A DNA stretch of 64,000 bases, from the sequence record NC_041878.1; one strand, given 5' to 3'. Below the pieces are notes generated by a model that made no database searches, had not been told where the DNA came from, and saw only the letters and a program-made list of their open reading frames with translations. The number at the start of each line of letters is the position of its first letter. The stretch's first letter is position 1. Positions 990 through 23,109 of this stretch are shown in pieces. The position numbers and the translations under genes were made by a program.

Positions 990-1023
990 GCCAGAGAAAT
1001 GGCCTAGCCCACAGGGTGCGGAG
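990..1023 (+). ncRNA. two-hairpin element copy 1
   Basis: GCC-AGAGAAAT-GGC-CTA-GCCC-ACA-GGGT-GCGGAG after TTGACA(952)/TACTAT(976). Confidence 0.7.
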
Positions 1024-1060
1024 ATCCGTCTATTGCTTTTTATTTGAATTTTGGACACAA

Positions 1061-1094
1061 TTCCGCACCCTGTGGGTCAAGGAGTTTCGCCTCC
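1061..1094 (-). ncRNA. two-hairpin element copy 2 (convergent with copy 1)
   Basis: GGAG-GCGAAA-CTCC-TTG-ACCC-ACA-GGGT-GCGGAA after minus-strand TTGCAT-17-CATAAT (1132-1104). Confidence 0.7.
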
Positions 1095-1160
1095 ATGTAA
1101 AGTATTATGCCAGTACTGCGAACATAATGCAAGGACTTTTTACGATTTTCTTTAAAAAAG

Positions 1161-1302
1161 TTTCCCCTTCTATATACGTATAAAGGAAGCGTTTAGAGCG
1201 TGTCAGATCCTGGGGCTTACAGTTTTGTACTTTATACTTTATAAAGCCGTGTAAAGCGTCCTATGCGTTCCTTGTACGTGTATACGTATATAGAGAAGGA
1301 AA
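1161..1302. repeat. large imperfect palindrome
   Basis: Perfect 13 bp IR CTATATACGTATA (1170-1182)/TATACGTATATAG (1281-1293) with imperfect flanks. Confidence 0.65.
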
Positions 1303-1476
1303 AGCCTGTTAGAAAGAATCTTATAAAAACTTATATAAAGTACTTGCAAAGGTTTTTTGGTGTGATAGTATTAATCCCGTCGAACAGGACAACGCTCTTT
1401 AAAAACTTGCTGGTGAATACTTAAACATGCCTCCAGGTACTTTGAAAAAAGAATCTGAGAGAATGAAAAAGTACTT

Positions 1477-1505
1477 GACAGCAAGAATAGAAAGTGTAGA
1501 ATGTT
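1477..1505 (+). promoter_or_regulatory. sigma70-type promoter
   Basis: AAAAAGTAC-TTGACA-17 bp-TAGAAT. Confidence 0.75.
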
Positions 1506-1511
1506 CAATAT

Positions 1512-1648
1512 CGAAAGGCGGTAAGGTTCGCCGGATGGTAGGAAGCGGTAGCAGGGCGATAAAGTACTGCTACAGTGATAAGCCGGAAGTGCTATCACAG
1601 CGTTATAAAGGTTAACATAACTGTTAACGTCCTATCTACTGCCTTTTG
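1512..1648 (+). ncRNA. candidate multibranched small RNA B
   Basis: Closing stem AAAGGCGGTA/CTACTGCCTTT; hairpins GTAGCAG/CTGCTAC, GTGATA/TATCAC, GTTAAC/GTTAAC; follows promoter. Confidence 0.55.
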
Positions 1649-1799
1649 ATTCTTTCAGTACGGTAAAAGGTACGAAAGAATAAAGATTCAGAAAGTTATC
1701 AAAAAGTACTTGACGGACTGAATCGCACGATGTAAGATGTTAAGTAAGCCGAGTGGCTAACCCAAAATTCAAAATTTAACTTTTAAGAAGGTATATATC

Positions 1800-2477
1800 A
1801 TGACTACTACTAACAACGCTAAAGCTACCAAAGTTACCCTGAACTCTATCGTTTTCGCTCCGGCTCCGGTACTGCGTGAACTGAAAGAAGGTGAAAACTA
1901 CACCAAAACCGAACTGAAAGCCCACGAAAAAGAAATGGGCGAATATCTCCGCACCACGTCGCACGATTTGGCGATGTACCTGGTAAACAAAACCGACAAT
2001 ACTGATACCATTGTCAAACTGTTTGCCGCTACCGCCGAAGCGATCCCTACAGTACTGGCCGAAGTACTGAAACAGCGTGAAGAAGAAGAAGCCGCTAAAC
2101 AGGCTGAACGCGAAAAAGCGGAAGAAGAAAAACGTCGCCTCGCTGAACAGGAAGAAAAAGAACTGCAAGCGAAGAAAGATGAAATGCTTAAACACATGAC
2201 CGATGTTCTGGGGCTGGATCTGGATGTTGCGAAAGCTGCGGTTGAAACGGTGGCGAAAAAGCTGAACGTTGGCAACCATACTAAAAACTCTTATGAGCGT
2301 GTAACCTGCACCATTGAAGGCAATCAGTACGATGTTCCGGTGCGTGGTAATATGTCTCAGGCACTGAAAGATCTGGCGGCGAAATATGGTTTCGCTGATG
2401 ACCGCGATGGATTCATCGAAAAATTCCGCGATGAACCTGCAACTGCTGATGCTGACAAAGATACCGCCGAAGCGTAA
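1800..2477 (+). CDS. coiled-coil protein with H-NS-like C-terminal half (putative nucleoid-associated protein)
   Basis: Promoter TTGACG..TAAGAT, SD AAGAAGG, host-like highly expressed codons (CTG/GAA/AAA/CGT); by-eye similarity to H-NS. Confidence 0.55.
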   Translation: MTTTNNAKATKVTLNSIVFAPAPVLRELKEGENYTKTELKAHEKEMGEYLRTTSHDLAMYLVNKTDNTDTIVKLFAATAEAIPTVLAEVLKQREEEEAAKQAEREKAEEEKRRLAEQEEKELQAKKDEMLKHMTDVLGLDLDVAKAAVETVAKKLNVGNHTKNSYERVTCTIEGNQYDVPVRGNMSQALKDLAAKYGFADDRDGFIEKFRDEPATADADKDTAEA

Positions 2478-2497
2478 TATCAAAAGTAATGCGGCAA

Positions 2498-2515
2498 GGG
2501 GGCTAGAAAGCCCCC
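2498..2515 (+). terminator. GC hairpin after first gene
   Basis: GGGGGCT-AGAA-AGCCCCC; weak U-tract. Confidence 0.5.
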
Positions 2516-2626
2516 TGAGCCTTTCTAACAGTACTGTAATACCTTTCCTCAAAGTACTATTAGAAACGCTTAGAATCAATCCTACAGCGTTTTAAGATGT
2601 ATACTTATTAAGTGAGAATAAACGCT

Positions 2627-2896
2627 ATGGAACTAAAACCACTTTCTGAACTCCGCGATAAAAAAACCATTGTCGCCAGGACAATGATCCACACTTCCCC
2701 ACGTCAAAAGGTTTTATCTGGCTATCTGGTTTTTGTGCTGGATGGTAAACTAATACAACGTCGGATCTATGATATGGCCTATAATAGTACTTTTATGAGT
2801 GCTATGTATATAGTTTACAAAGGCGTTAACTATGCCGTAGATCTTGCATGTAAGACGATTAGCGGGGCTTTCAGCGTCGAAACGTTGAAAGTATAA
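2627..2896 (+). CDS. hypothetical protein
   Basis: ORF; ATG at 2627 after GTGAGA. Confidence 0.7.
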   Translation: MELKPLSELRDKKTIVARTMIHTSPRQKVLSGYLVFVLDGKLIQRRIYDMAYNSTFMSAMYIVYKGVNYAVDLACKTISGAFSVETLKV

Positions 2897-2907
2897 GCCT
2901 ACAATCA

Positions 2908-2937
2908 AAAGCCCTTAGAAACGTTTCTAGGGGCTTT
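2908..2937. terminator. intrinsic terminator
   Basis: AAAGCCCTTAGAAAC/GTTTCTAGGGGCTTT hairpin. Confidence 0.7.
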
Positions 2938-3031
2938 ATATTTGATTTTAAAAAGTACTAAGAAAGTACTTGCAATTTATTTTTGAATCTGTAGAATACT
3001 CGTTATTGAAACACGTAACGAGATTTAAGAA

Positions 3032-3316
3032 ATGCAAGTAACACTGAACGGATTTACTTTTACAAAGAATGTTGATGGTACTGATAACATTCAGTCAGTA
3101 CTTAAAAACAAAGATAATAAAGCATTAGGCGGGATTGTCAAAGATGCTAAGAAGATGGCAAACTTACAACGCCTGAAACGTTCGCCTGATGTTCTGGTAT
3201 TCCTGGCTAAAGTACAGGAAGAAACTGAAAAAGTTTACTTTGAACAAAAGAAACCAAAACCTTACAATAAGTACAAAAGGAAATTTAATCCTTGCATTCA
3301 TTCTATAAATGTGTAG
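3032..3316 (+). CDS. hypothetical basic protein
   Basis: ORF behind TTGCAA..TAGAAT promoter. Confidence 0.75.
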   Translation: MQVTLNGFTFTKNVDGTDNIQSVLKNKDNKALGGIVKDAKKMANLQRLKRSPDVLVFLAKVQEETEKVYFEQKKPKPYNKYKRKFNPCIHSINV

Positions 3317-3351
3317 AATGTCTTATATCGAAACGCGACGGAGTAAACAAG

Positions 3352-3741
3352 ATGGAAAGTAAAGCGAAGTTAGAACAATACAGATTAGTACTTGATGTAC
3401 TGATTCAAATGAAAGATTGTATTGACAAAGATGATACTTATACTACAGTACTGAATAAGTCATTCAATCTTTCTCGCTCCCTGGGTATCTGCTGGCATGT
3501 ATATGTTCACACTCCACCAGCGGAGATCACTGGTATCGGATCGGACTATCTTGAACCTGCATTCATTGCGTTAGGGCTTGATCGTGAATATCCGGTTGAA
3601 TGCCAGGTTGATACTGATTCGCCGCGAATCCTGCACTTTACACAACGTAACCTTTACGATCCTGATAACGAGTGCGGAAAGTTGCGGATCAAGTTGGTTA
3701 ATGATTTGATTCAGTACTTTGAACAAAAGTTATCGCAGTAA
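3352..3741 (+). CDS. hypothetical protein
   Basis: ORF; SD GGAG before ATG 3352. Confidence 0.8.
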   Translation: MESKAKLEQYRLVLDVLIQMKDCIDKDDTYTTVLNKSFNLSRSLGICWHVYVHTPPAEITGIGSDYLEPAFIALGLDREYPVECQVDTDSPRILHFTQRNLYDPDNECGKLRIKLVNDLIQYFEQKLSQ

Positions 3742-3799
3742 AAATCTTTACAAAAAAGAGGTTGACTTCGGTTGGCCTCTTATAGTACTATATTAATAA

Positions 3800-3833
3800 G
3801 CCAGAACAAAGGCGTGACCCACAGGGTGCGGAG
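3800..3833 (+). ncRNA. two-hairpin element copy 3
   Basis: GCC-AGAACAAA-GGC-GTG-ACCC-ACA-GGGT-GCGGAG after TTGACT promoter embedded in a terminator hairpin. Confidence 0.7.
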
Positions 3834-3870
3834 ATCCGTTCAGTGAAAAGATAATGAATTTTAGATATAA

Positions 3871-3904
3871 CTCCGCACCCTGTGGGTTAAGGAATTTCGC
3901 TTCC
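3871..3904 (-). ncRNA. two-hairpin element copy 4 (convergent with copy 3)
   Basis: GGAA-GCGAAA-TTCC-TTA-ACCC-ACA-GGGT-GCGGAG after minus TTGACA-17-TATATT. Confidence 0.7.
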
Positions 3905-4164
3905 ATGAATAATAATATACCACTGCTGGAAAGTACTGTCAAGGAAAAAAACAGGGGAACTTTCATGTTCCCCCTAAATGCGACAAAGGCATATATCGGA
4001 CTTTGTGCGAGCTTCGTTGATCGCATGAGTACTATATCACAACGGCCAGGCGAGTGCAACTATTTGATCTGTGATAAAAATATACTTTCAAACGTGAAAA
4101 GTACTTGCAAAGAATGATTAAAGGAGTATACTTAACTTATCGAAACGAACAAGAGGATTTAAAA

Positions 4165-4437
4165 ATGGCTAGTTACAGTGCGTCAATGATTGTTAAGGAT
4201 TTAGCAGGAAAGCCGTGTTTAGCTTGCGGTTCCTTTGGTAACATTGCGATAGATGGTAGATTATCTATTTCCAGGGCGATAGAGATAGCGGAGGAAAGTT
4301 TTAAGAAAGAATCCAAATTTCAAAACAGCGAATACTTGGGATTTGTAATTGAGAAAACTTCTCGATTCGTTGAATATCGTAATCCGAGTATTATCGGTAA
4401 TAAAGAAGTAAAAACTTTTAAAGAACTTGAACGATAA
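4165..4437 (+). CDS. hypothetical protein
   Basis: ORF; SD GAGGA; own promoter. Confidence 0.8.
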   Translation: MASYSASMIVKDLAGKPCLACGSFGNIAIDGRLSISRAIEIAEESFKKESKFQNSEYLGFVIEKTSRFVEYRNPSIIGNKEVKTFKELER

Positions 4438-4500
4438 TACTTGCAAAGTGGGTAATGGTTTAGTACTATTACCCTATCGAAACGAACTGAGGATTTAAAG

Positions 4501-4947
4501 ATGGGAACTCCAGCATGTATCGCAGTAATGAACGACAATAAAGAAGTTACTTGGACTTATGTTAACTATGACGGTTATTTAAACGGCGTAGGTAGAATGT
4601 TGATCGAGCATTACAACGATCTGTCAATAGCTAAAAAATTAATTTCAATGGGTGATATTTCAACATTGAAGCGAACGATGGATTGCCCCGTTGGTCACTC
4701 ATTCGCTACACCTGCACCAAATTGCACAGTATTCTATGAGCGGGATCGTGGTGAAGATAATGTAAAACCACGTCACGGCGATTATGCTATGTTCCTGCGT
4801 TGTAATAAAGGTACAATTAGTTATATCTACACGGATGGACAATGGCACATAGTACGGGAAACAAGTAAACGCGGTGCAATTTTAGACCGTCATAAATTGT
4901 TAGTACTTGGCGAAGTGTTATCCGGTTTATATGATTTTTCGCGTTAA
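4501..4947 (+). CDS. conserved phage hypothetical protein
   Basis: MGT...YVNYDGYLNGVGRMLIEHY resembles the widespread phage YxHWDGYPxxVG family; SD GAGGA. Confidence 0.8.
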   Translation: MGTPACIAVMNDNKEVTWTYVNYDGYLNGVGRMLIEHYNDLSIAKKLISMGDISTLKRTMDCPVGHSFATPAPNCTVFYERDRGEDNVKPRHGDYAMFLRCNKGTISYIYTDGQWHIVRETSKRGAILDRHKLLVLGEVLSGLYDFSR

Positions 4948-5023
4948 TTAAATTGTATATAGTACTTGCAAAATTCTGCGAGTACTATATAATTACTTAT
5001 ATCTTAAACGGGAGAACAAAGAA

Positions 5024-5479
5024 ATGAAAGCTATCGAATTTGAACAGAAAGTAAGAGAATCCTTTTTGAAGTACTTCCCGAACGGGCATATTCGTTTATC
5101 TAAACTTGCTTTAGGTGGCGGCTTACATATTGCTTGCGGCCTGATTGCAAACGTTAAAGAGATCACCGCAACGATCAGACAAAACGACCCGTTAAACGTT
5201 TCTATCTTTATTCATGATAACTATGTATTCAATGATTCAGAAACGGATCTTGATAATGTAGTACTTGAATTTGATAATTCTCATGTATCGGTTATTCCTG
5301 ATAATCCGCACATGTACAGCCAATCGCACAAGATCGCAGCACGTAAAATTAACGCTGCACCAGAAAAAGCACTGGTAAACCTGGATAAGTATTTTAAACG
5401 TGTTAAAGATGTTGTCACAGAGCAAGCGGCATTAAACCGGATTATCAAACAAGATACAATCGATCCTAAGTATCTGTAA
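5024..5479 (+). CDS. hypothetical protein
   Basis: ORF; SD GGGAG; own promoter. Confidence 0.8.
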   Translation: MKAIEFEQKVRESFLKYFPNGHIRLSKLALGGGLHIACGLIANVKEITATIRQNDPLNVSIFIHDNYVFNDSETDLDNVVLEFDNSHVSVIPDNPHMYSQSHKIAARKINAAPEKALVNLDKYFKRVKDVVTEQAALNRIIKQDTIDPKYL

Positions 5480-5559
5480 AATTATTATCAAAAGTACTTG
5501 CAAAATGAATGCGAGTACTTTATAATAAAGTTACATTATTAATCAAGAGGAAGTAACAA

Positions 5560-5685
5560 ATGGTCACTATCGAAAAAGTAAAAGAAATGCTGGAAGAACT
5601 CCGCGATCAGGGTTTTGTTGTTGCTGATACTGATGACGAATTAGAAGCAGCGGCAGAAATAGCATTGACCGTTTTAAATAGCTAA
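5560..5685 (+). CDS. small acidic protein (41 aa, not in ORF track)
   Basis: Promoter + SD GAGG + ATG; MVTIEKVKEMLEELRDQGF... Confidence 0.7.
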   Translation: MVTIEKVKEMLEELRDQGFVVADTDDELEAAAEIALTVLNS

Positions 5686-5757
5686 TTAAAAATAGTACTT
5701 GCATTAATTTGTGAGTACTATATAATTACTTATATCGAAACAGCGGAGTAACTTGCA

Positions 5758-5985
5758 ATGATTGAATTTCGCAGAACTATGGAAATGTCTATCACTATCA
5801 CTGACCCACGTTATACTGAGAAAGAGATCGCGGAAGGGTTATCTGACGGCTCAATGAATATGGGCGAAGAAGATGGCGAAGATGCAGGAAAGATTTTTAA
5901 TAGTGCATGGGATGAAATCGCTACTATTGATGATCTTCATGTATCGGATGTTATGACGCCGGATGTTCAATTTTCAGTGATTTAA
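5758..5985 (+). CDS. acidic hypothetical protein
   Basis: ORF; SD GGAG; own promoter. Confidence 0.75.
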   Translation: MIEFRRTMEMSITITDPRYTEKEIAEGLSDGSMNMGEEDGEDAGKIFNSAWDEIATIDDLHVSDVMTPDVQFSVI

Positions 5986-6058
5986 TTATCAAAAGTACTT
6001 TGACAATTTTGTTAGAGTACTTTATAATTAACTTACATTAAGCGAGAGGATTTTAAAA

Positions 6059-6481
6059 ATGTTACAAGTCAGAGGTTATGCGGAAGGTGGTTTCTGTTTC
6101 ATGTTGGATGATAAAGCGGTATCAGTACATGAAGCATTATTAGCGAATGGGGGTAAGTTTCATAAGAGAACCATTAACGCTCTTAATCGTAATAACCTGG
6201 CGAACGAACAAGATCTGGCAGAGTTTGAAAAGCTGGTAAAGGTTTTACATACTGGCTTAGATGCCTTTAATGCTCGTAAAGTACTGCGTGATCATTTCAA
6301 TATTGATGTATTGAAGATTGAGAACTATTATATTTTAACTAGTTCTGAAATTTATGATCTCATGAAAGTATATGAGATCTGTAAGTACAAAGTAAGTGTA
6401 AAAAGTCCTGCACACTCAACGATGTACTATTTCTTTGAGTACTTAAACCGGAAAGATGTTCGCCGCCTGGAAAGAACATAA
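6059..6481 (+). CDS. hypothetical protein
   Basis: ORF; SD GAGGA; own promoter. Confidence 0.8.
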   Translation: MLQVRGYAEGGFCFMLDDKAVSVHEALLANGGKFHKRTINALNRNNLANEQDLAEFEKLVKVLHTGLDAFNARKVLRDHFNIDVLKIENYYILTSSEIYDLMKVYEICKYKVSVKSPAHSTMYYFFEYLNRKDVRRLERT

Positions 6482-6532
6482 TTCAAGAAAGGGGTTGACT
6501 TCGGTTAGCCCCTTCTGTATACTGTATTCATT

Positions 6533-6566
6533 GGCAGATAAAGCCGCAAGCCCATAGGGTGCGGAG
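6533..6566 (+). ncRNA. two-hairpin element copy 5
   Basis: GGC-AGATAAA-GCC-GCAA-GCCC-ATA-GGGT-GCGGAG after TTGACT..TATACT. Confidence 0.7.
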
Positions 6567-6662
6567 GTATGTCTGTAAGAATATAAATTTGAATAAAGTA
6601 CTTGCAATCTATTTTAAAAGGCGTATACTTATCTATATCGAAACAACACAGAGGAAAACGAA

Positions 6663-6998
6663 ATGGAACAGACTACCCTGGTAAATGAAGATGCAATCAT
6701 TGATTGTCTCCTGAATGTAATCCTTAACGCTGGCTATTGTGTAAGCGTGAATGATGGGGAATGTACTGTTATTAATCGCAGTACTGACAAAGAAGAGATT
6801 ATGTCTGAGCTTCGCGGTACAGACAGCGATTGGATCAGAATTTATAAACCTGGTGAAGCCTACCATGTTGGATCTGTTGAACTGATTTACAACAATGGAT
6901 CGGACGGATTAGATCTTATCAGTAATACAGCGGCAAGTGATTTAGAAGCCCTGGATGAATTACTTATTCCAGTATATGAATTGATTGATACGCTGTAA
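6663..6998 (+). CDS. acidic hypothetical protein
   Basis: ORF; SD GAGGA; own promoter. Confidence 0.8.
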   Translation: MEQTTLVNEDAIIDCLLNVILNAGYCVSVNDGECTVINRSTDKEEIMSELRGTDSDWIRIYKPGEAYHVGSVELIYNNGSDGLDLISNTAASDLEALDELLIPVYELIDTL

Positions 6999-7067
6999 AC
7001 ATTATCAAAAGTACTTGCAATTAGAAAGCGAGTACTTTATAATGATTATATTAAATCAGGAGGATAT

Positions 7068-7235
7068 ATGGACGAACTTTTAAAACTCTGGCAACAATTC
7101 AGTACTGTATCAGTTAACGATGATGATGAAATTGAAGAATCATTTTTGCACTTTGAAAAGGGAACAGACAGATTAGAAGTGTGGAAATGGTTTGAGAATC
7201 AGAATCCTGATTTTAAAGTATCTGATTTAGTTTAA
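7068..7235 (+). CDS. small acidic phage protein (55 aa, not in track)
   Basis: SD AGGAGG; LW..F..V.V.DDDEIEE.FLHF..GT.R.EVW.WFE resembles a common phage family. Confidence 0.75.
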   Translation: MDELLKLWQQFSTVSVNDDDEIEESFLHFEKGTDRLEVWKWFENQNPDFKVSDLV

Positions 7236-7318
7236 TGTAAACATTATCAAAAGTACTTTACTTATTTTGTAGAGTACTTTATAATGATTATAGTTAATTA
7301 AGAGAGAGGGTTTAAGAA

Positions 7319-7498
7319 ATGAAATTATATGCTTATGCGTCTAATAGTGGTGAAGCTATTGCAGTTGGTAGATCTGAGCGTGGTGCTAAATCTACTGCTA
7401 CTAAAAACAAAAGTACTGAAATAGGTTATATCAGTACTATTAACAATATGTACATTCCTACTCATAAAAAAATTAATAATAAGTGGGTATCAATTTAA
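7319..7498 (+). CDS. small basic protein (59 aa, not in track)
   Basis: Promoter + SD GAGG + ATG. Confidence 0.7.
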   Translation: MKLYAYASNSGEAIAVGRSERGAKSTATKNKSTEIGYISTINNMYIPTHKKINNKWVSI

Positions 7499-7570
7499 TG
7501 TATATAAGTACTTGCAAGTTATTTGTGAGTACTATATAATGATTGTACTTTAAGTGAGAGGAAAGAAAAC

Positions 7571-7942: not shown

Positions 7943-7988
7943 TTAACTATAGGGGAACATTGTTCCCCTTTTTAAGTGAGATCCGCCT

Positions 7989-14183: not shown

Positions 14184-14239
14184 CATAATCCCCTAAATAT
14201 GATTATAATAAATTTATAGTCATTAGGGGATTTTTTATT

Positions 14240-14758
14240 ATGCCAGGAACATTCCGCAGTAAAAATAGTGCTACCCTAGCAGGTCACTCTGATAAATGGA
14301 GTAACTCTAATCGTAGTGCGTCAAGTCATGATGCTGGTCAAGGTAGTAGAGGAAGCCGAAACCAGGGAACAGGTATTCAAGGGAAACTAAACACTATGCC
14401 ATCACAAGGCGTAGACACTTCCAAAATGAAACCAGAAGAAAAGTTAAAGTACTTTAAATCGTTGGGGTTAATGCCTGGTGCAGAACCTACACCAGAACCA
14501 GAAGTACAACCTGAACCAAAACCAGAACGTAACAAAGTACAAGCATTAACGCAAGACCTACAGAAAGTATTTGCTAACACTCCAAACTATCTGCATAGTA
14601 TTGTACAGCAGCTTAAAGAAGTGCCACCAGCACAATTTAAAAAAGCTGTATTCGCGGCGTATCGTGCAATGCAAGAAGCTACAGCACAAGCAAACGTAGA
14701 TCCTAAAGCAGTACTTAAACATATAGAAGATGCAATTAACCAAAGTATCTACGATTAA
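14240..14758 (+). CDS. hypothetical protein, disordered N-terminus, PE repeats
   Basis: ORF; SD AGGGGA inside a long hairpin. Confidence 0.8.
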   Translation: MPGTFRSKNSATLAGHSDKWSNSNRSASSHDAGQGSRGSRNQGTGIQGKLNTMPSQGVDTSKMKPEEKLKYFKSLGLMPGAEPTPEPEVQPEPKPERNKVQALTQDLQKVFANTPNYLHSIVQQLKEVPPAQFKKAVFAAYRAMQEATAQANVDPKAVLKHIEDAINQSIYD

Positions 14759-14821
14759 TATTTGACAGTACTCAATTCATCTGATAGTATTAAGTTATTC
14801 CAAACAACAAGGTACTATCAA

Positions 14822-15160
14822 ATGAAAAGAATTTTATTAGTCGGACTTCTGTTTGCAAGTACTGTTAACGCTCAAATGTTAACTTGCTCTAACAGTACTC
14901 TTTCTTTTCGTAATAACGATGGAAGTTATAGCGAAAAGGTAGCAACAAAACTTTCAAACATCAACGTAGAAGTACTGGAACAAGCTATAACGTTCTATGC
15001 TGGTGGAATTGATAAACTGGAATTTTGGAAAGATTACAATGAGTATCGTAATGATACTGGTAAGGTAGTTCGCTCAGGTGATACTTTTTCATTGTATACC
15101 ACTATTCCAACTGATACAAATAAAATGCAGCCTGTTAAAGTTGATTATGTCTGCAAATAA
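14822..15160 (+). CDS. secreted protein
   Basis: Signal peptide MKRILLVGLLFASTVNA. Confidence 0.75.
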   Translation: MKRILLVGLLFASTVNAQMLTCSNSTLSFRNNDGSYSEKVATKLSNINVEVLEQAITFYAGGIDKLEFWKDYNEYRNDTGKVVRSGDTFSLYTTIPTDTNKMQPVKVDYVCK

Positions 15161-15213
15161 ATTCAAATAAAAGGTTGACTTCGGTCGGCCTTTTTTGTTA
15201 TACTTACTTTATT

Positions 15214-15246
15214 GGCAGATAAGCCGTTAGCCCATTGGGTGCGGAG
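15214..15246 (+). ncRNA. two-hairpin element copy 8
   Basis: GGC-AGATAA-GCC-GTTA-GCCC-ATT-GGGT-GCGGAG after TTGACT..TATACT. Confidence 0.7.
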
Positions 15247-15402
15247 TTATGTCATTTTTAAGTACTTTCTATTTTGAAAATATTATACAAAAACTTATAA
15301 AAAGTCCTTGCAGATAATTCTGATTCTGCTATTATAACCACATCAAGACGGGGCAACGTCTTAGAAAACAAAATTCAAATATTAAGTGAGAGGCAGTACA
15401 AA

Positions 15403-15750
15403 ATGACTAAATCAATCAAAGTTAAAGCTACTAAATCAGTTCAGGCAAACAACGTAGAAAACATTAAAAGACTGCCTATTGGTACTGTAGTAGTTCATAA
15501 CTATGGTGAGTTTACCCACGGTGTAATTGTAGGTCATGCAGAACATGCTTACCAGGTTTATTTTAGTGCTGATATGTCACCGATGCTTCCAAAGTATCAG
15601 GCTAATACCGATGAAGCAATTAAAGCACGTATGCGTACTATTACCCTGGGCAAAGGATTCTTTGTAAGTCGCTTCAAAACAATTGAAGCAGTTCGTGAAG
15701 CACAACGCAAATATAAAAATCGTGGTCTGGATCTCGAATCAGCAGCGTAA
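15403..15750 (+). CDS. hypothetical protein
   Basis: SD GAGG; own promoter. Confidence 0.8.
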   Translation: MTKSIKVKATKSVQANNVENIKRLPIGTVVVHNYGEFTHGVIVGHAEHAYQVYFSADMSPMLPKYQANTDEAIKARMRTITLGKGFFVSRFKTIEAVREAQRKYKNRGLDLESAA

Positions 15751-15840
15751 TTGAATTTAAAAAGGAGTTGACAACAGTTGGCTCCTTTGCTATACTACCC
15801 ATAAGAACTTAATTGAAGTACTTTTTAAAGGCATATCATC

Positions 15841-16059
15841 ATGAGAAACATTTTAGAAGAACTCCTTAAAGAACCAACCGAAGAAGAAATGCAAGCCAGT
15901 GCAGTACTGCGTGATCTCTGTATTCAAAATGAGCTTGAGTTTCCTGAACAATTGTTCATGTTGCAGTATTTTGCAGGTATTGAACCAGGTCTGATCGTTT
16001 CAAAGGTGAACGCATTAAACACGCCTTTGATTGAAAATGCAATACACGTAATGCACTAA
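15841..16059 (+). CDS. hypothetical protein
   Basis: ORF. Confidence 0.7.
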   Translation: MRNILEELLKEPTEEEMQASAVLRDLCIQNELEFPEQLFMLQYFAGIEPGLIVSKVNALNTPLIENAIHVMH

Positions 16060-16114
16060 TTAATTCTACAAAGTACTTGACTCCGGTTGAGTACTTTAGT
16101 ATTATATATTCATT

Positions 16115-16145
16115 GGCAGATAAGCCGTTACCTACAAGGTGCATA
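16115..16145 (+). ncRNA. two-hairpin element copy 9 (compensatory variant)
   Basis: GGC-AGATAA-GCC-GTT-ACCT-ACA-AGGT-GCATA; one C-G pair swapped to T-A. Confidence 0.65.
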
Positions 16146-16267
16146 ATTGTATCTGTATAAAAGAAAATATAAATTCAAATAAAAAACTTGCATTTATCCG
16201 TCAGTACTGTATAATGATTTACATGGATTAGGGAATGGCCTTAATCATTTTAAGTGAGAATACTATC

Positions 16268-16837
16268 ATGAAATTTGAAGAACTGAACGAGCAACAAAAA
16301 GCTAGAGCACTTGACAAACATCGTTATATTAACGTTGATTATGACGAATGGCATGATTTTGTCAAAGACGATCATCATTCGAAACTGGAAGCCGTTGGTT
16401 TTGAAGGCGTAGAGTCGCGTTACAGTGGTTTTTGTTCCCAGGGCGACGGGGCAAGTTTTCTTGCAAGTAACGTTGACATTGAGAAGTTTCTGCGTTCACA
16501 AAAACGTTGGACGCATTATCGTGCCTTGCATGAGTTTATTCGTATCAATGAGATCACGGCGAAAGTAGTTGCGTTACCTTCTCATTACGTACACTACAAT
16601 ACAACTCAAGCGGAGTTATCAGGCGATTGGTATATTGATTTTACTCCTAAGCAGGAAGCACTATATAAAGAACTCGAAGAAGAGATCGACGCATATATCA
16701 CACAAGCGGGTAAAGATTATTACGCTGATCTTGAAACTGCGTACTACGATCTTACCAGTGACGAACAAGTAGAACAAACAATCATCGCGAATGATTTAGA
16801 TTTTGAAGAAACAGATCATTCAGTAACTTATCTTTGA
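16268..16837 (+). CDS. ICE/plasmid-type protein often annotated 'antitoxin of toxin-antitoxin stability system'
   Basis: F.EL.E..K..A, SGFCSQGDGASF and YYDLTSDEQVEQTIIANDLDF motifs; function not established. Confidence 0.7.
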   Translation: MKFEELNEQQKARALDKHRYINVDYDEWHDFVKDDHHSKLEAVGFEGVESRYSGFCSQGDGASFLASNVDIEKFLRSQKRWTHYRALHEFIRINEITAKVVALPSHYVHYNTTQAELSGDWYIDFTPKQEALYKELEEEIDAYITQAGKDYYADLETAYYDLTSDEQVEQTIIANDLDFEETDHSVTYL

Positions 16838-16895
16838 CAAGTACTAAAACTTTATGATATAGTACTCGCATAGAAAAAAACACGAGCAAACAACT

Positions 16896-17045
16896 ATGCG
16901 AGTACTTAAATCACATAACGATATAATTTTCGCTACTTATGGCGATTGTTATATGGTTAAAAAAGGGAGGATGAAAATAGTTTGTAATAATCCCGTAATT
17001 GCTTTATACTATTACTGTAAACTTTTAAGTGAGAATATAAAATGA
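16896..17045 (+). CDS. small hypothetical protein (49 aa, not in track)
   Basis: Follows promoter; ATGA overlap with next gene. Confidence 0.5.
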   Translation: MRVLKSHNDIIFATYGDCYMVKKGRMKIVCNNPVIALYYYCKLLSENIK

Positions 17046-17374
17046 GAAAACCTAACGTAGAAATTCTTTGTGATTCGCATCATGGTGTACATATCCCGTC
17101 CATCATGATTCAACGTCTGGTAGATGCAGGTTGGCGAAACATTCCCGCCGATGCCGTAGAAGTACTTTCTTCCGTAGACAATGAAGGTTATTGGGATTGT
17201 TGGGAAGAAGTACTTAACAATGCAGAATGGCATGATGCAAGTACTGGTCAAGTATTCAAGTTGCACCAGGACGGCGATCTGTTTGCTTATTGCAAGGATA
17301 GTATGACTCCGCAAGAGTATCATCATATGTTTGGTGAATATCCAGACTGGTACAATCAGGAAGAAGAAGCATAA
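17042..17374 (+). CDS. acidic hypothetical protein
   Basis: ORF; YWDCWEEVLNNA...LHQDGDLFA. Confidence 0.8.
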   Translation: MRKPNVEILCDSHHGVHIPSIMIQRLVDAGWRNIPADAVEVLSSVDNEGYWDCWEEVLNNAEWHDASTGQVFKLHQDGDLFAYCKDSMTPQEYHHMFGEYPDWYNQEEEA

Positions 17375-17428
17375 TTAAATTTAAAAAGTACTTGACTCCG
17401 GTCAGGTACTTTGCTATTATGTATACAT

Positions 17429-17463
17429 AGCAAGAACAATGCTTTAGCCCATAGGGTGCAGGA
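17429..17463 (+). ncRNA. two-hairpin element copy 10
   Basis: AGCA-AGAACAA-TGCT-TTA-GCCC-ATA-GGGT-GCAGGA after TTGACT..TATTAT. Confidence 0.65.
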
Positions 17464-17583
17464 GTGTAGTTATAGTATAAGGATGTAGTACTGAAAGAAA
17501 TATAAAGTTAAATGAAAAATTCCCTTGCTTTCTTTCTTTCGTGTGGTATACTTTAGTTATTGAAACAGAGCGGAGTTTGAAAA

Positions 17584-17826
17584 ATGTCTAAATCAGGAAT
17601 CGAATTTAAAGTGCGGAAATGGTCTGAGCATGGTGCAAGACGCCCATTCGATGTAGTAGCACTGGATCACGACAACAACAAACAGCACTACCAGCCAGGC
17701 TGCACTTTCAGTACTGAGGATGGGGCAGAGCGTCACGCTCAAGTACTGGCACAGCGTATTAAAGACAATGCAAACACTATTAAGTTTATTCGTGATTGCT
17801 GGCCTGTAGACGGCGGGATCGAATAA
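17584..17826 (+). CDS. hypothetical protein
   Basis: SD GGAG; own promoter. Confidence 0.75.
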   Translation: MSKSGIEFKVRKWSEHGARRPFDVVALDHDNNKQHYQPGCTFSTEDGAERHAQVLAQRIKDNANTIKFIRDCWPVDGGIE

Positions 17827-17905
17827 AAATTCAAATGAAAAAGTACTGGACAATCTAAGTTTAGTACTTTATAATTTAAATACAAAACGAATTGAGGAAC
17901 TGATT

Positions 17906-18793
17906 ATGTTGAAAATGTATAAAGGTATCAATGGCTTGGCACTGAAAGCTAACCGTCCACTGAACAGAACTGAACTGTTAGAAGTTGTACCTTCAATTTT
18001 CGCTATCGAAGGGCATTCTTCACGTAGTTCACGTTTTGCACCAGTTGCTACTATCGACGTGGTAGACCGCCTGGCACAAGAAAACTACTTCCCGATGTAC
18101 GCGATTCAATCGCAGACTCGCGATGTATCTAAACGTGATTATACTAAACATATGATCCGTTTTCGTAAGCCTGGCGATCGTGAAGGTGAAGCAAATGAAA
18201 TCATCCTGGTTAACGCCAACGATGGTACAAGTGCGTATCAGTTAATGGCAGGTCAATTCCGTTTTGTTTGTTCGAACGGTTTAGTTATGGGTGAAATGTC
18301 TCATAACACTAAGATCTACCATAAAGGTACTGACATTATGGATGATGTTATTGAAGGCGTTTATACAGTAGTTAAAGACTTTGACGAAATCGAACGTTAT
18401 AAAAAGGAAATGAAACAGATCCAGTTAAGTACTGCACAACGTGATTCATTCGCAATGACGGCGTACATCATGAAAGAAGGTTTACCAGAAAACGGTGATT
18501 GGGCGAATGCTGTATATCAACCACGTTTGTTACTTTCTGGTAAAGATCTTAACACGGATGATCGTTATGATAACAGTCTGTATAGTACTTTTAACACTGT
18601 ACAGCAACACATGATGGCTGGTGGTCAGCGTGGATATAACCCGCAAACTGGTCGCCGTCGCTCAAGCCGTGAAGTAACTAACATCGATAAAAACATCGAA
18701 CTGAATAGTAACTTATGGAAAGCTGCAATGAACATGGTTGACCAGTACGATTTACTGAAAAACGCAGATCCAGAAGAGATTCTGCAATTTTAA
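17906..18793 (+). CDS. DUF932/DUF945 family protein
   Basis: SRSSRFAPVATIDVV, TKHMIRFR, EIILVNANDGTSAYQLMAGQFRFVCSNGLV. Confidence 0.9.
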   Translation: MLKMYKGINGLALKANRPLNRTELLEVVPSIFAIEGHSSRSSRFAPVATIDVVDRLAQENYFPMYAIQSQTRDVSKRDYTKHMIRFRKPGDREGEANEIILVNANDGTSAYQLMAGQFRFVCSNGLVMGEMSHNTKIYHKGTDIMDDVIEGVYTVVKDFDEIERYKKEMKQIQLSTAQRDSFAMTAYIMKEGLPENGDWANAVYQPRLLLSGKDLNTDDRYDNSLYSTFNTVQQHMMAGGQRGYNPQTGRRRSSREVTNIDKNIELNSNLWKAAMNMVDQYDLLKNADPEEILQF

Positions 18794-18868
18794 AAGCTAA
18801 AAGGGGTTGACAATTGGTTAGCCCCTAAGCTATACTCATATCTGACAAGTAAACGGAGTAACGGAACC

Positions 18869-19207
18869 ATGAGCATGAATTTTTTCATCATGACCAATAC
18901 AACGAAAGACGGTCACACAGAGTACGGCAATACTGAGTATGTAATTGTAGGGCAGGATCGTTTAGGTCGCCGTTACCGTCTGGATTCATCAGCATTGACG
19001 AACGCAGATAAAACTGATCGTGAATGCCGTGATATACAGAACCGTCGCATTATGCGTATGCTTCAAAGTATCGCGTATGGTCAGAAGGTCGATCTTAATA
19101 ACTGGACTGAGATCGAACCAGCATACGAATCTGAGGCTTTCTATAAGTTAGATACTAAGAAGCGTATCACGCTGGAACAAAAACACGTTGAGATGTACGG
19201 TGTTTAA
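18869..19207 (+). CDS. hypothetical protein
   Basis: SD GGAG/GGA; own promoter. Confidence 0.8.
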   Translation: MSMNFFIMTNTTKDGHTEYGNTEYVIVGQDRLGRRYRLDSSALTNADKTDRECRDIQNRRIMRMLQSIAYGQKVDLNNWTEIEPAYESEAFYKLDTKKRITLEQKHVEMYGV

Positions 19208-19410
19208 CTTATAGTACTGCAAGATCCATGCCAGGGCAACCAAATAACGGTTGCCCTTTTTTGTATTCAGCGTATAATAAATTTCGGTTAAATGTTGATT
19301 TATATCAAGTTTCTTATTGCAGGTTTTGTAAATCATGCTACGGTGCTATTGACAGATTAGGAGTAGTCTGAGATAATAGCCCTACGTTGAGCGAAGCGAG
19401 TAATAATAAT

Positions 19411-19641
19411 ATGATCAGTGTTGGCAGCAGTGAATTAGAAGCATTAAAGATCCGTTGGTATCAATTAGCCATTGACGGCAAGCCAGTTATCGGAGAAGAT
19501 AAGAAGTTGTTCGACTCTTTAAACTGTTACGTACAGGACGAATTAAAAAAGGCATATCTCTTAGGCGTTGGCGACGAACAAGAAACCTGGATGATACCAC
19601 AAAATCAATCCAGTACTAATAAAGTTAGTCAAAAACAATAA
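19411..19641 (+). CDS. hypothetical protein, paralog of 20533..20709
   Basis: Shared SEL...WY.L...G....G.D..LF.SL.....EL..AY..G. Confidence 0.7.
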   Translation: MISVGSSELEALKIRWYQLAIDGKPVIGEDKKLFDSLNCYVQDELKKAYLLGVGDEQETWMIPQNQSSTNKVSQKQ

Positions 19642-19718
19642 TCCAAATTCTTCTAAAAAGGGTTGACTTAGGTTAGCCCTTTTTGCTATACTCTTTTTAC
19701 ACCAACAAATAAGAGTAC

Positions 19719-20072
19719 TTGACAATGTTAGACATTTATATCAGAAGTGACTTAGTGCCAGATGGTTGTGATGAATGCGGTACTCCAAAAGAAAAAACAG
19801 AGTACTACATTATTGCTGAATCAGAAACCGGCCAGCGTCTTAGATTAGAAAGTGTTTCCATTGTGAACCGCGATTATACGGATGAACAATGTGAAGCGTA
19901 TCTTCAACCAACTGTAGATAAAATTAAAAATCATTTAGCTGGTGGCGGTAAACTTAATCCTGATTATTGGTGCGAGATCGATCCACGTTACGGATCTAAA
20001 CGTTACCAGGATTTAGATAGTACTGGCTTCTTCTATCAACGCGAGAAACGCGAAGATACTTATCGCGATTAA
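19719..20072 (+). CDS. hypothetical protein
   Basis: ORF; start TTG 19719 or ATG 19725. Confidence 0.75.
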   Translation: MTMLDIYIRSDLVPDGCDECGTPKEKTEYYIIAESETGQRLRLESVSIVNRDYTDEQCEAYLQPTVDKIKNHLAGGGKLNPDYWCEIDPRYGSKRYQDLDSTGFFYQREKREDTYRD

Positions 20073-20271
20073 GTAAACACCAATTCAAGATAATTTCGAG
20101 TACTTGACAAATCAAATACCAGTACTCGAAATTTTCATTTAGTGATCAGCAGTTGTCTAAATTTTCGTGAGTGCGTGAACGTGTATACGAATGCGTATGA
20201 TATGTGCGTTATATACTTGCATATGTATCTGTATACGTGTATACTATCTATAATGAATAAGGAGATACAAC

Positions 20272-20463
20272 ATGACCAAAGCACAGTTTGAAAGTAAAGT
20301 CGATGATGTTATCAACTTAGTAACTCATTCCAGTATCACAATACCAGCAGCAGTTGAAAAGGTATGCGGCGAACCCATCAATAAAGAGAATAGCGAACTG
20401 CAATTCTCATTACAAGATGCAGTTGAAAAAGAATTGCATCCTGAATGGTGGATTAAACAATAA
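20272..20463 (+). CDS. small hypothetical protein
   Basis: SD AAGGAG. Confidence 0.75.
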   Translation: MTKAQFESKVDDVINLVTHSSITIPAAVEKVCGEPINKENSELQFSLQDAVEKELHPEWWIKQ

Positions 20464-20532
20464 ACTTTGTACTTGACAACTATATATCAGTACTGATATA
20501 CTAACCACACATTAAGCGAGAAAGGAAACATC

Positions 20533-20709
20533 ATGGTACAGGTAGATTTGTCAGAACTCAGAACGAAATGGTACAACCTGGGGAAAGCGGGTACTGCAAT
20601 TGCTGGTACTGATGCAGAACTGTTTAACTCACTCGATCCGTGGCAAAAACGGGAACTCCGCAACGCCTACGTTGAAGGAACTACGGAAGCCCTTTCAACC
20701 GTAGCATAA
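20533..20709 (+). CDS. small protein (58 aa, not in track), paralog of 19411..19641
   Basis: SD AAGGA; MVQVDLSELRTKWYNLGKAG... Confidence 0.75.
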   Translation: MVQVDLSELRTKWYNLGKAGTAIAGTDAELFNSLDPWQKRELRNAYVEGTTEALSTVA

Positions 20710-20821
20710 CTCTAACAGGCTATCTTATCATAAAAGTGTTGGCAAAGTCCAGCACTTTTTTTCGTTTTGAAGCAAAAAAATTCCTTGACCTTCCCTGCGA
20801 TATTTGAGAGAATACCTACAA

Positions 20822-20854
20822 GCCAGAACAAAGGCGTAGCCCACCGGGTGCATA
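20822..20854 (+). ncRNA. two-hairpin element copy 11
   Basis: GCC-AGAACAAA-GGC-GTA-GCCC-ACC-GGGT-GCATA after TTGACC..AGAAT. Confidence 0.65.
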
Positions 20855-20892
20855 GGCACGTCCAAAATTCAGTACTCAAATTTTAGATAGAT

Positions 20893-20926
20893 CTCCGCAC
20901 CCTGTGGGTCAGACCGTTACACCGGT
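20893..20926 (-). ncRNA. two-hairpin element copy 12 (convergent with copy 11)
   Basis: ACCG-GTGTAA-CGGT-CTG-ACCC-ACA-GGGT-GCGGAG after minus TTGCAT..TATAAT. Confidence 0.7.
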
Positions 20927-23107: not shown

Positions 23108-23109
23108 GA

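Follow-up and report, generated by a model that had tools for sequence, protein, structure and literature searches.

A candidate family of promoter-coupled structured RNAs in the terminal repeat of Pectobacterium phage vB_PcaM_CBB

Twelve copies of a short element, each lying directly behind a sigma70-type promoter, are found in the direct terminal repeat (DTR) of Pectobacterium phage vB_PcaM_CBB (KU574722/NC_041878), a giant phage of plant-rot bacteria. The best reading of the sequence is that they represent an undescribed family of early non-coding RNAs or 5'-leaders that is selected at the RNA level. The window analysed here comprises bases 1-64000 of the genome, matching the record with 100% identity over bases 1-22000, and the DTR is the early region of CBB. 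As the initial annotation had supposed, the element matched no known family in the sources searched. With gathering thresholds, Rfam gave 0 matches in the 64-kb window, and at E<=1 within 900-21100 it returned only sub-threshold miRNA-precursor look-alikes of a long inverted repeat. No match was obtained in cellular genomes or E. coli, and no description was found in the literature searched.

A covariance model (R1) was run over the whole 64-kb window with filters off. It matched exactly 12 copies, between 987 and 20929 (25-65 bits, E 5e-19 to 8e-6), at the places first proposed; the next-best match scored 10 bits (E 0.73), and no copy was found past 20,929. Eleven copies contain the core CCCAYNGGGTGC exactly, and copy 9 carries it with 2 mismatches. 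Confinement to the first 21 kb, as originally claimed, is correct within the window, but the real boundary is that of the DTR, which measures 22,456 bp (PMC5259590). The features are as follows.

1..22456, no strand: DTR of CBB, annotated in the record as 'redundant repeat'; all 12 element copies lie within it
952..1030, plus strand: copy 1, promoter 952-981 (TTGACA-18-TACTAT), element 987-1030; 64.8 bits by covariance model (CM); left member of convergent pair 1
1054..1132, minus strand: copy 2, promoter 1132-1104 (TTGCAT..CATAAT), element 1097-1054; CM 59.7 bits; right member of convergent pair 1
3762..3840, plus strand: copy 3, hairpin-embedded promoter 3762-3791, element 3797-3840; CM 61 bits; pair 2
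3864..3942, minus strand: copy 4, promoter 3942-3914, element 3907-3864; CM 61.6 bits; convergent pair 2
6495..6573, plus strand: copy 5, hairpin-embedded promoter 6495-6523, element 6529-6573; CM 27.4 bits
8419..8491, plus strand: copy 6, hairpin-embedded promoter 8419-8447, element 8453-8491; CM 37.8 bits
10165..10301, minus strand: copy 7, promoter 10301-10275, element 10267-10223; CM 41.1 bits; solitary antisense unit
15169..15253, plus strand: copy 8, terminator/promoter overlap 15169-15204, element 15210-15253; CM 31.6 bits
16070..16153, plus strand: copy 9, terminator/promoter overlap 16070-16105, element 16111-16153; CM 25 bits
17385..17471, plus strand: copy 10, terminator/promoter overlap 17385-17420, element 17426-17471; CM 26.3 bits
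20785..20862, plus strand: copy 11, promoter 20785-20813, element 20819-20862; CM 53.4 bits; convergent pair 3
20886..20964, minus strand: copy 12, promoter 20964-20937, element 20929-20886; CM 60.7 bits; convergent pair 3

Over the whole CBB genome, loci with the exact pattern occur only in 1-24317 and 349325-378379, the regions that hold both DTR copies. Confinement to the terminal repeat also holds in three relatives. The matches in fENko-Kae01 lie at 980-18785 (30 kb searched; DTR 1-19736), and those in fEgEco12 at 1088-19589 (26 kb searched), inside a DTR of 20,993 bp (PMC13070987). Matches were also found at 949-16314 in XbC2, a phage reported on Xanthomonas. In total, 86 copies were gathered from about ten genomes, of which 76 were used for the alignment and 75 distinct copies for covariation. 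No start codon is conserved 3' of the element, which bears out the earlier statement that it contains no ORF. The annotated minus-strand CDS 3793-3966 merely overlies an inverted repeat, and copy 3, located there, belongs to repeat family D11.

The strongest sign of RNA-level selection comes from hairpin 1, which in almost every copy sets in 1-3 nt past the predicted start. Its stem of 3-5 bp carries loops such as GCGAAA, GAGAAA, AGAUAA and AGAACAA, and the variants in CBB are GCCA/UGGC, GGAG/CUCC, GGAA/UUCC, AGCA/UGCU, GGC/GCC and ACCG/CGGU. At least 25 stem variants occur around a conserved GNGAAA-like loop. In the 75 distinct copies, double changes that alter both sides occur in each of the four pairs, and the paired fraction is 93.7% of cells. 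The covariation score is 0.418; shuffles give 0.131 and slid registers no more than 0.088. RNAalifold recovers the same fold. The covariation of stem 1 noted at first is thus upheld across relatives. Copies that lack hairpin 1 and keep only GAAAACA were found in several genomes; copy 6 (8453-8491) is such a variant, with the GAAA motif kept. Hairpin 1 subtypes are identical word for word across genera, also at different loci, which hints at sequence-specific roles beyond a protein-binding model.

The second part of the element behaves differently, and here the two-hairpin architecture first described required revision: hairpin 1 covaries, whereas hairpin 2 (CCC-AYA-GGG) is conserved in sequence, with almost no C-to-U drift, and a competing helix had been missed. 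The compensatory change described for copy 9 (CCU/AGG in hairpin 2) is present; the tail of this copy reads GCAUAA. In the competing helix 3, GGGUG pairs with the tail motif YRUCY, with 96.4% of cells paired vs 34-70% in slid registers; the shuffle control is uninformative for it because the 5' strand is invariant, and the same sequences had served to derive the structure. The invariant 5' strand also explains why the changes in all five pairs, G-C/G.U or U-A/U.G, are one-sided. As helix 3 excludes hairpin 2, the modelled RNA may switch between two folds. The end of hairpin 2 lies 10-11 nt before a conserved Y-R step of the tail. The sequence 3' of helix 3 is mostly A-rich, and a U-rich stretch occurs only in some copies (1, 8). 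The element was also considered as an intrinsic terminator and rejected, as no U-run lies directly 3' of hairpin 2, where the tail reads GCGGAG...

On the basis of the hairpin 1 covariation and the G.U-tolerant variation of the tail, the sequences show that selection acts on RNA, not DNA. The contrary proposal is a role of the DNA itself, either as a repressor operator or roadblock at +21 to +31, or as a transcription-primed R-loop or origin at the convergent pairs. This proposal could draw on the fixed CCC-N3-GGG palindrome, on the convergent promoters spaced ~110 bp apart, on an RNA that is G-rich over GGGUGCGGAG, and on the Fur box that lies between both copies of a pair in some relatives. 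However, the CCC-GGG spacing is 3 or 4 nt within single genomes, so that hairpin 2 is better explained as a hairpin than as a rigid DNA operator, and neither duplex DNA nor an RNA-DNA hybrid offers a way to read out the covariation of hairpin 1 or the G.U-type variation of the tail. It is also implausible that 22 kb should contain twelve origins. In R-loop origins of the T4 oriF/oriG type, the transcript of a promoter remains hybridised to an unwinding element further downstream and primes replication. A promoter and an AU-rich stretch 3' of it are present here, but the element varies in the manner of RNA-RNA (G.U) pairing, which weakens the R-loop primer once suggested. A DNA-level role is given only a slim chance.

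The coupling to a promoter, also claimed at the outset, is without exception. Each CBB copy follows a TTGAC-type -35 box and a TAnnnT -10 box; the -10 box ends ~7 nt before a conserved CA, and the element begins 1-3 nt past this CA. A promoter lies directly before the element in 86/86 copies, and the alignment of their upstream regions has an A-run between -60 and -66, TTGAC near -55 relative to the anchor, and TAnnnT. Many of these promoters are combined with a predicted terminator. A GGGG..CCCC hairpin with a U-rich 3' flank overlaps the -35 box in the hairpin-embedded promoters, and a stem-loop is present in the promoters of copies 3, 5, 6, 8, 9 and 10 and ahead of copy 11, whose promoter lies directly 3' of the terminator at 20732-20759. 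For copy 8, the scan placed a terminator-like site at 15169-15194 and the promoter at 15175-15204. Copies 1, 2, 7 and 12 have no promoter stem-loop. A terminator-like GC hairpin with a T-run lies on the minus strand upstream of the promoter of copy 4 (3974-3953), so that the cassette, hairpin and T-run included, is also present inverted (3974-3864).

This arrangement recalls the promoter-early stem-loop (PeSL) cassettes of RB49/phi1 and other T4-like phages (PMC2839356, PMC4122927), which consist of a promoter and a stem-loop and end at the transcription start (PMC2839356). A plainer reading, raised from the beginning, is therefore a mobile promoter/terminator cassette of the PeSL kind, whose repeats are retained as patches of homology that allow recombination and gene shuffling, and whose transcribed part is itself without function. 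The upstream half does fit, with a consensus sigma70 promoter, A/T-rich (here A-rich) sequence upstream and, at copies 3, 5, 6, 8, 9 and 10, a putative terminator hairpin overlapping the promoter at the -35 box. The multiple intergenic copies in a plastic early region with small ORFan genes nearby, the inverted cassette, and the identical hairpin 1 subtypes at different loci in different genera agree with it too. The transcribed module, however, falls outside the PeSL definition: the conserved, covarying part in CBB is the ~45 nt past the start (+1 to +45), and the compensatory changes of hairpin 1 and the wobble-only changes of the tail reflect selection for RNA pairing that recombination homology does not impose. 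Moreover, the element also occurs behind promoters without a hairpin, and hairpin-promoters of the same type occur without it (15761-15790 and 19656-19685), from which it follows that the element is a separable module. Most copies of CBB occupy syntenic positions in GAP32, at odds with shuffling. The cassette reading is considered very unlikely as a full account.

The copies differ in what they are expected to transcribe. Gene-sense copies head transcription units directly 3' of predicted terminators, and a convincing terminator within 160 nt past the copy was found for 0/36 of them. About two-thirds of the copies are thus, as read from their context, mRNA leaders that open transcription units rather than free small RNAs. 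Downstream of copy 5, a second promoter (~6592-6640) precedes gp015 (6663); copy 6 is likewise followed by a second promoter (8556-8583) and gp021, and copy 9 by a second promoter and gp042. Four of the 12 copies in CBB, and two to four per relative, are antisense to all genes; the solitary ones among them have a terminator 28-52 nt 3' of the element, giving a predicted RNA of ~100 nt, and the positions of the antisense units are kept across genera. Copy 7 is an example, with a bidirectional terminator at 10194-10171, a predicted RNA of ~100 nt, and orthologous units in GAP32, fENko-Kae01 and fEgEco12. Three convergent pairs are conserved, near both repeat ends in CBB and its relatives; copies 1 and 2 together form an inverted repeat of 16-17 bp.

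Two cis-acting roles have to be weighed against these data. The element could be a 5' stabiliser or tag of early polycistronic mRNAs, in which a hairpin near the triphosphate end blocks RppH/RNase E decay and the core marks transcripts for protection or later shut-off. The position of hairpin 1 suits this proposal and resembles that in ompA 5' UTR-type stabilisers, where a hairpin lies a few nt from the 5' triphosphate end. All 36 gene-sense copies read into genes, and as heads of their units they would begin the longest mRNAs. Yet any hairpin would do for such a role, and a fixed sequence is not needed in the ompA type, whereas the element adds the invariant CCC..GGGUG core and the competing helix 3. 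The conserved antisense and convergent copies would be left unexplained, and copies without hairpin 1 persist in several genomes. A stabilising role is rated as quite improbable.

The other cis-acting role is that of an RNA polymerase modifier similar to lambda nut or HK022 put, where the nascent RNA, with or without a small phage protein, stays on the polymerase and makes it resist pausing and termination. HK022 put RNA, of two stems and ~65-70 nt, suppresses termination through a cis effect on RNA polymerase. Like the element, the nut sites of lambda/P22 and put are promoter-proximal RNA signals heading early operons; the gene-sense copies open units right past strong predicted terminators, and the two-hairpin layout resembles that of put. 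In lambda-type nut sites, boxB is a hairpin with a GNRA-like pentaloop that an arginine-rich N protein binds. Hairpin 1 bears a resemblance to it, no more: its short stem varies freely in sequence, its purine loop is GNRA-like, and a fixed motif, linear or hairpin, comes next. The distance between hairpin 2 and the Y-R step equals that of a hairpin-stabilised pause, where the hairpin ends 10-11 nt before a Y-R step. The presence of the element in XbC2 also speaks for this role and points to a possible partner in the core machinery, for example RNA polymerase. On the other hand, about one-third of the copies are oriented away from all genes, and read-through from the solitary copies, 28-52 nt before a bidirectional terminator, would run antisense through the genes upstream. 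There is no obvious need for antitermination either, because no terminator lies within 160 nt of the gene-sense copies and each unit has its own promoters. A boxA (CGCUCUUA-like) sequence is absent from every column of the 76-copy alignment, and no clear arginine-rich N-like protein, nor any Pfam match to one, was found among the DTR proteins. The order and size of the parts differ from put and nut (~45 nt vs ~65-70 nt for put), and there are 12 copies per repeat, not two. An antitermination-like role is unlikely, but deserves more weight than the stabiliser.

The explanation to which most weight is given, at somewhat less than even confidence, is that the element RNA is a recognition module: an abundant early RNA that binds one conserved protein and titrates or recruits it. 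Because about one-third of the copies are directed away from all genes, with a terminator closing the solitary ones at ~100 nt, a stand-alone RNA role is favoured. The element would be the transcribed half of a cassette in which a terminator hairpin and sigma70 promoter are followed by a structured RNA of ~45 nt. Host RNA polymerase would fire these promoters when the terminal repeat enters the cell, and the transcript would start, 1-3 nt from its 5' end, with hairpin 1, its variable stem and its GNRA-like purine-rich loop. In the fixed core that follows, GGGUG would pair back with CCC (hairpin 2) or forward with YRUCY (helix 3), and an AU-rich stretch would close the module. The RNA may then be recognised by one conserved protein, of the phage or of core host machinery. 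No partner candidate was seen among the DTR proteins, which are ORFans except Band_7 and DUF932. With 12 genes per repeat and 24 per packaged genome, the RNA would be abundant early, and in the gene-sense copies the same protected, tagged structure would cap the 5' end of early polycistronic mRNAs. The start sites, ends and abundance of these transcripts are all predicted. Two observations stand against this explanation: about two-thirds of the copies read into genes, which would fit a cis-acting leader equally well, and in the convergent pairs each RNA would run into the complement of its partner, an odd arrangement for a simple decoy.

A bolder version, for which the authors' confidence is lower still, is that a paralogous RNA family of about ten members per genome, with a two-state core and cross-genus hairpin 1 'alleles', might, within minutes of infection, disable or re-programme a conserved RNA-binding machine of the cell. 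A defence nuclease, the degradosome and RNA polymerase are candidate targets here. If this were true, the terminal repeat of Rak2-like jumbo phages would house an RNA-based host-takeover system.

By analogy, early expression of the element is predicted from PA5oct, a related jumbo phage using host RNA polymerase, in which the DTR genes are highly transcribed early and two terminal-repeat ncRNAs (ncRNA001/002, of 236 and 451 nt) are abundant (PMC7318152). These ncRNAs have no sequence or structure match to the element, and the covariance model detected no copy in PA5oct 7500-23500 (best 7.6 bits).

A more general likeness exists to the P4 CI RNA and the P1/P7 c4 RNA, single-copy immunity RNAs of temperate elements that are processed by RNase P and base-pair with defined targets. 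For the element, neither a target nor a processing signal of this kind was seen. Compared by general description, these are also short structured RNAs, cut or terminated from the 5' part of early transcripts, and complementary repeats occur in the same region, as do element and anti-element in the convergent pairs described here.

The element lies within the direct terminal repeat (DTR) of Pectobacterium phage vB_PcaM_CBB (CBB). Bases 1–22000 of the window are 100% identical to KU574722/NC_041878 (CBB) from position 1, and the record labels 1–22456 as a 'redundant repeat'. For CBB, the genome paper (PMC5259590) gives 355,922 bp plus a terminal repeat of 22,456 bp, deduced from a doubling of read depth and from PFGE. 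The initial annotation had confined the element to the first 21 kb; all twelve copies do lie there, and the record annotation together with the genome paper identifies that stretch as the DTR, which is present twice per packaged CBB genome.

The copies were located with a covariance model (R1) built from six in-register CBB copies. Run over the 64 kb with filters off, it returned exactly the twelve sites first noted, at 25–65 bits, with a gap below them to the best non-member match in the window (10 bits, E 0.73). The core CCCAYNGGGTGC gives 11 exact matches, and copy 9 has it with two mismatches, all below 21 kb in the window. As first described, each copy has its own promoter, a -35/-10 pair upstream. 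About 7 nt separate the end of the -10 box from a nearly invariant CA, with which the element opens. The earlier view that it contains no ORF also holds, as no conserved start codon is found 3' of it. A leader peptide was rejected, there being no conserved start codon suitably spaced from GGAG. The annotated CDS FDG95_gp007 (57 aa, window 3793–3966, minus strand) covers convergent pair 2 as well as the pair's promoter on the minus strand and is probably not a real gene.

Hairpin 1 begins 1–3 nt 3' of the CA. Over 75 distinct copies, its pairs change on both sides, which bears out the covariation initially proposed for this stem: all four pairs show two-sided changes (GC, CG, AU, UA), with 93.7% of cells paired. 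The covariation score was 0.418; shuffles gave 0.131 and slid registers no more than 0.088. RNAalifold recovered the same helix. At least 25 stem variants carry a conserved loop (GCGAAA 27, GAGAAA 13, AGAUAA 8, AGAACAA 7). Copy 6 is without hairpin 1, and a stemless subtype retains CAU-GAAAACA. Some hairpin 1 'alleles' are identical word for word between genera, such as UAGCAAGAACAAUGCU, which was found in CBB, GAP32, RaK2, fENko-Kae01 and one IMG/VR genome; structure is therefore not the sole constraint on hairpin 1. A sigma-dependent pause through a -10-like hexamer in hairpin 1 was considered and dropped, as the hexamer is not conserved between subtypes.

Hairpin 2 (R-CCC-AYA-GGG-U) is fixed in sequence and does not covary: there are one wobble, two mismatches and one compensatory case, the CCU/AGG already reported for copy 9. 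Inside single genomes its loop length is 3 or 4 nt, which is easier to reconcile with a hairpin than with a rigid DNA operator. A further helix, new relative to the initial two-hairpin description, can form when a tail, Y-R-Y-Y-Y, situated 9–13 nt 3' of GGGUG, pairs with GGGUG. Pairing in this helix 3 reaches 96.4% of 390–415 cells, against 34–70% in slid registers. The tail changes are all wobble-preserving (U/C facing G, A/G facing U); transversions are absent from two columns and number 3–6 in the others. Three of the four rare GGGUG substitutions are G-to-A, each facing U. An invariant 5' strand leaves no room for double changes and makes the shuffle control uninformative; helix 3 is thus supported but not proven. 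Hairpin 2 and helix 3 are mutually exclusive because both use GGGU, and in the thermodynamic ensemble hairpin 2 is the favoured fold for 53 of the 86 copies, helix 3 for 11. A shorter tail hairpin, GCGG-AGAU-CCGU, could be upheld for the AUCCGUC subtype only, not as a general feature. A pseudoknot or long-range pairing was also rejected, as mutual information among the linker, loop and tail columns reflected lineage correlations only.

Tolerance of G.U is a property of RNA–RNA pairing. Variation of this kind, as read from the aligned copies, argues that selection acts on the RNA and not on duplex DNA or an R-loop. A role at the DNA level, as an operator, a roadblock or an R-loop origin, is contradicted by this variation and by the variable spacing, and is the least probable of the explanations considered.

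Rak2-like jumbo phages were found to carry the motif when IMG/VR was scanned with a 16-nt pattern and phage records were searched by short blastn. The carriers identified in this way are:

GAP32
Serratia phage BF
Erwinia pEa_SNUABM phages
RaK2/K64-1
Salmonella Munch-type phages
Klebsiella phage fENko-Kae01
E. coli 121Q-type phages

The model added 64 copies from GAP32, fENko-Kae01, RaK2, BF and six IMG/VR jumbo contigs, and it found 10 copies in fEgEco12 and nine in XbC2. The recorded hosts are Pectobacterium, Cronobacter, Klebsiella, Serratia and Escherichia, plus Xanthomonas for one phage. The latter is XbC2 (Mimasvirus, recorded on Xanthomonas vesicatoria), with its copies at 949–16314 including two convergent pairs, so the motif is not restricted to phages recorded on Enterobacterales. 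In the Rak2-like jumbo phages (CBB, GAP32, RaK2, BF, fENko-Kae01 and coliphages such as fEgEco12), the terminal repeat is about 20 kb long and encodes almost nothing but unannotated ORFans, and the motif is its most conserved non-coding feature. Wherever the repeat is defined, the motif follows it:

Location of the motif relative to defined terminal repeats
CBB: repeat 1–22456 and 355923–378379; whole-genome pattern loci only within 1–24317 and 349325–378379
fENko-Kae01: repeat 1–19736 (PhageTerm); 10 of 10 matches at 980–18785, 30 kb searched
fEgEco12: repeat 20,993 bp (PhageTerm and restriction mapping, PMC13070987); 10 of 10 matches at 1088–19589, 26 kb searched

In fEgEco12 (1–26000) and the window (1–24000), gene spacing also shifts where the repeat ends. 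Within it the genes have gaps of 60–250 nt between them, each with its own promoter, while just outside they abut or overlap in an operon-like manner.

Many of the element's promoters are wrapped in a hairpin, made either by GGGGTTGACttcgGTTAGCCCC or by two AGTACT palindromes, and the -10 region coincides with the hairpin's U-rich 3' flank. For copies 8, 9 and 10 the scan gave the same bases two calls, terminator and promoter. The hairpin-wrapped design is shared with the PeSL of RB49/phi1 (PMC2839356, PMC4122927), and the initial suggestion of a PeSL-like promoter cassette fits the upstream half. It does not extend to the element, since the conserved part of PeSL is not transcribed, whereas here it is. 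PeSL-type hairpin-promoters also occur without the element, at window 15761–15790 and 19656–19685 (GGGGTTGAC..GCCCC type, belonging to D11, a repeat family of hairpin-embedded promoters), and the element is also found behind plain promoters that have no hairpin. It is thus a separable module outside the PeSL definition. A PeSL-like recombination cassette with no RNA function at all is very improbable in the face of the RNA-type covariation.

The AGTACT palindrome itself occurs 309 times in the window, against about 18 expected from shuffles, both in and beyond the terminal repeat (e.g., 220, 238, 974, 1112, 10171, 10189, 10207). Within the repeat it typically appears twice per promoter (AAAGTACTTGCA..GAGTACTTTATAAT), such that a hairpin around the -35 box is possible.

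The gene-sense copies sit right after strong terminators and right before a second promoter and a gene, a position that opens transcription units. About one third of all copies are oriented against every gene, and these are of two kinds. The first is the solitary antisense copy:

CBB window 10267–10223, minus strand (copy 7)
fENko-Kae01 3311, minus strand
fENko-Kae01 11004, minus strand
fEgEco12 4774, minus strand

These copies have a bidirectional terminator 28–52 nt past the element, and the predicted RNA is about 95–100 nt. The second kind is the convergent pair, with starts about 110 bp apart, at about 1.0, 3.8 and 20.9 kb in CBB and also in GAP32, BF, fENko-Kae01, XbC2 and fEgEco12. Transcripts of such pairs would run into the partner's complement and could form a long hairpin of 16–17 bp.

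The element is a conserved, promoter-coupled and DTR-restricted module that varies like a folded RNA. In PA5oct, high early expression has been reported for the DTR genes and for two ncRNAs of the DTR (PMC7318152); from this analogy and from promoter quality, we infer that the element is transcribed early by the host sigma70 polymerase. Since about one third of the copies lead no gene and have yet been kept in place, a stand-alone RNA function is favoured. Our tentative preference is for a free-acting, abundant early RNA that would bind one conserved protein, as a decoy or platform, while the gene-sense copies would tag early mRNAs with the same protected 5' structure.

Three of the other explanations can be ranked ahead of the DNA-level role. 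First among them is a nut- or put-like leader that modifies the polymerase. Hairpin 1 is boxB-like and the unit-opening position would suit such a leader, but nut sites have a boxA, which the element lacks, the antisense copies do not fit, and there are no nearby terminators to overcome: in five genomes, a convincing terminator is absent from the 160 nt after each of the 36 gene-sense copies. This explanation is unlikely. Next comes a plain 5' stabiliser or tag, which would not need the invariant core and is somewhat less probable again; the PeSL-like cassette ranks third. A mundane leader role is quite possible.

The element falls in the general territory of promoter-proximal regulatory RNAs and phage early sRNAs, and the first impression that it matches no known family was upheld: Rfam returned no relevant family, either at gathering thresholds or at E ≤ 1. 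It is not an intrinsic terminator, as neither hairpin 2 nor helix 3 is followed by a consistent U-run. Several resemblances were weak or inconsistent and were set aside. The matches to the XerC arm of dif (GGTGCGCATAA-TGTATA), ops/RfaH (GGCGGTAG), CRISPR-repeat mimics and ToxI are partial, and a quarter of the copies lack the GGAG/GGA of CsrA (GGA) and RegB (GGAG) sites. In 185,579 cellular genomes a 23-nt pattern had no match and a 19-nt pattern had two, both chance-like (a Cytophagales MAG and Streptomyces). Blastn against complete E. coli genomes gave no match, and thus no sign of a host homologue or mimic at the sensitivity of that search. The model, run over PA5oct 7500–23500, found no element in the terminal repeat, including its RNA-seq-supported ncRNAs. 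The motif is not described in the CBB, fEgEco12, Sharanji, PA5oct, Avs5 or Matilda papers, nor was it met in motif-string or cappable-seq literature searches, and the literature searched contained no transcriptome for any motif-carrying phage. Apart from Band_7 and DUF932, the DTR proteins are ORFans, and neither an arginine-rich N-like protein nor an RNA-binding domain stands out among them. Neither tblastn with the Band_7 protein nor a hairpin at 20175–20244 (z = -0.8) provided a lead.

The element is thus a candidate for a previously undescribed family of RNA motifs, marked by an unusual two-state core, many copies and strict confinement to the DTR. It predicts primary 5' ends of early units, several RNAs of about 100 nt, and an RNA that can adopt either of two mutually exclusive folds. 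Should it bind a protein of the host or of the phage, an RNA component would be added to host takeover by jumbo phages; if it is nut/put-like, it would represent a new class of processive antitermination site. It is also useful for annotating Rak2-like genomes and finding repeat boundaries.

Other signals were observed as well. The fENko-Kae01 terminal repeat has five near-consensus Fur boxes (≤3 mismatches) against 0.04 expected, including 775–799, 2342–2360 and 7309–7327, and one lies exactly between the convergent copies 7257+/7335-. Fur-box matches also occur in spacers of two other sequences (L005 and L055), and CBB has none. A palindromic GCGAATGATTATCATTTCGC is located between the fENko-Kae01 pair 980+/1066-. 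Two LexA-box-like sites (ACTGT-N8-ACAGT) are found in the window, at 10192–10209 and 241–258, against 0.09 expected; the former lies between copy 7 and its terminator, and the equivalent TACTGTACAAATAAACAG is kept in fENko-Kae01 and an IMG/VR relative. An iteron-like array of AGATGG(C/A)TA/GGATAGAC motifs, with four overlapping copies of a 45-nt repeat, occupies window 689–805, less than 1 kb from the left genome end; the first convergent pair follows about 200 bp downstream. The terminal bases, TATCCGT, are found again within this array, which could be a packaging or replication site.
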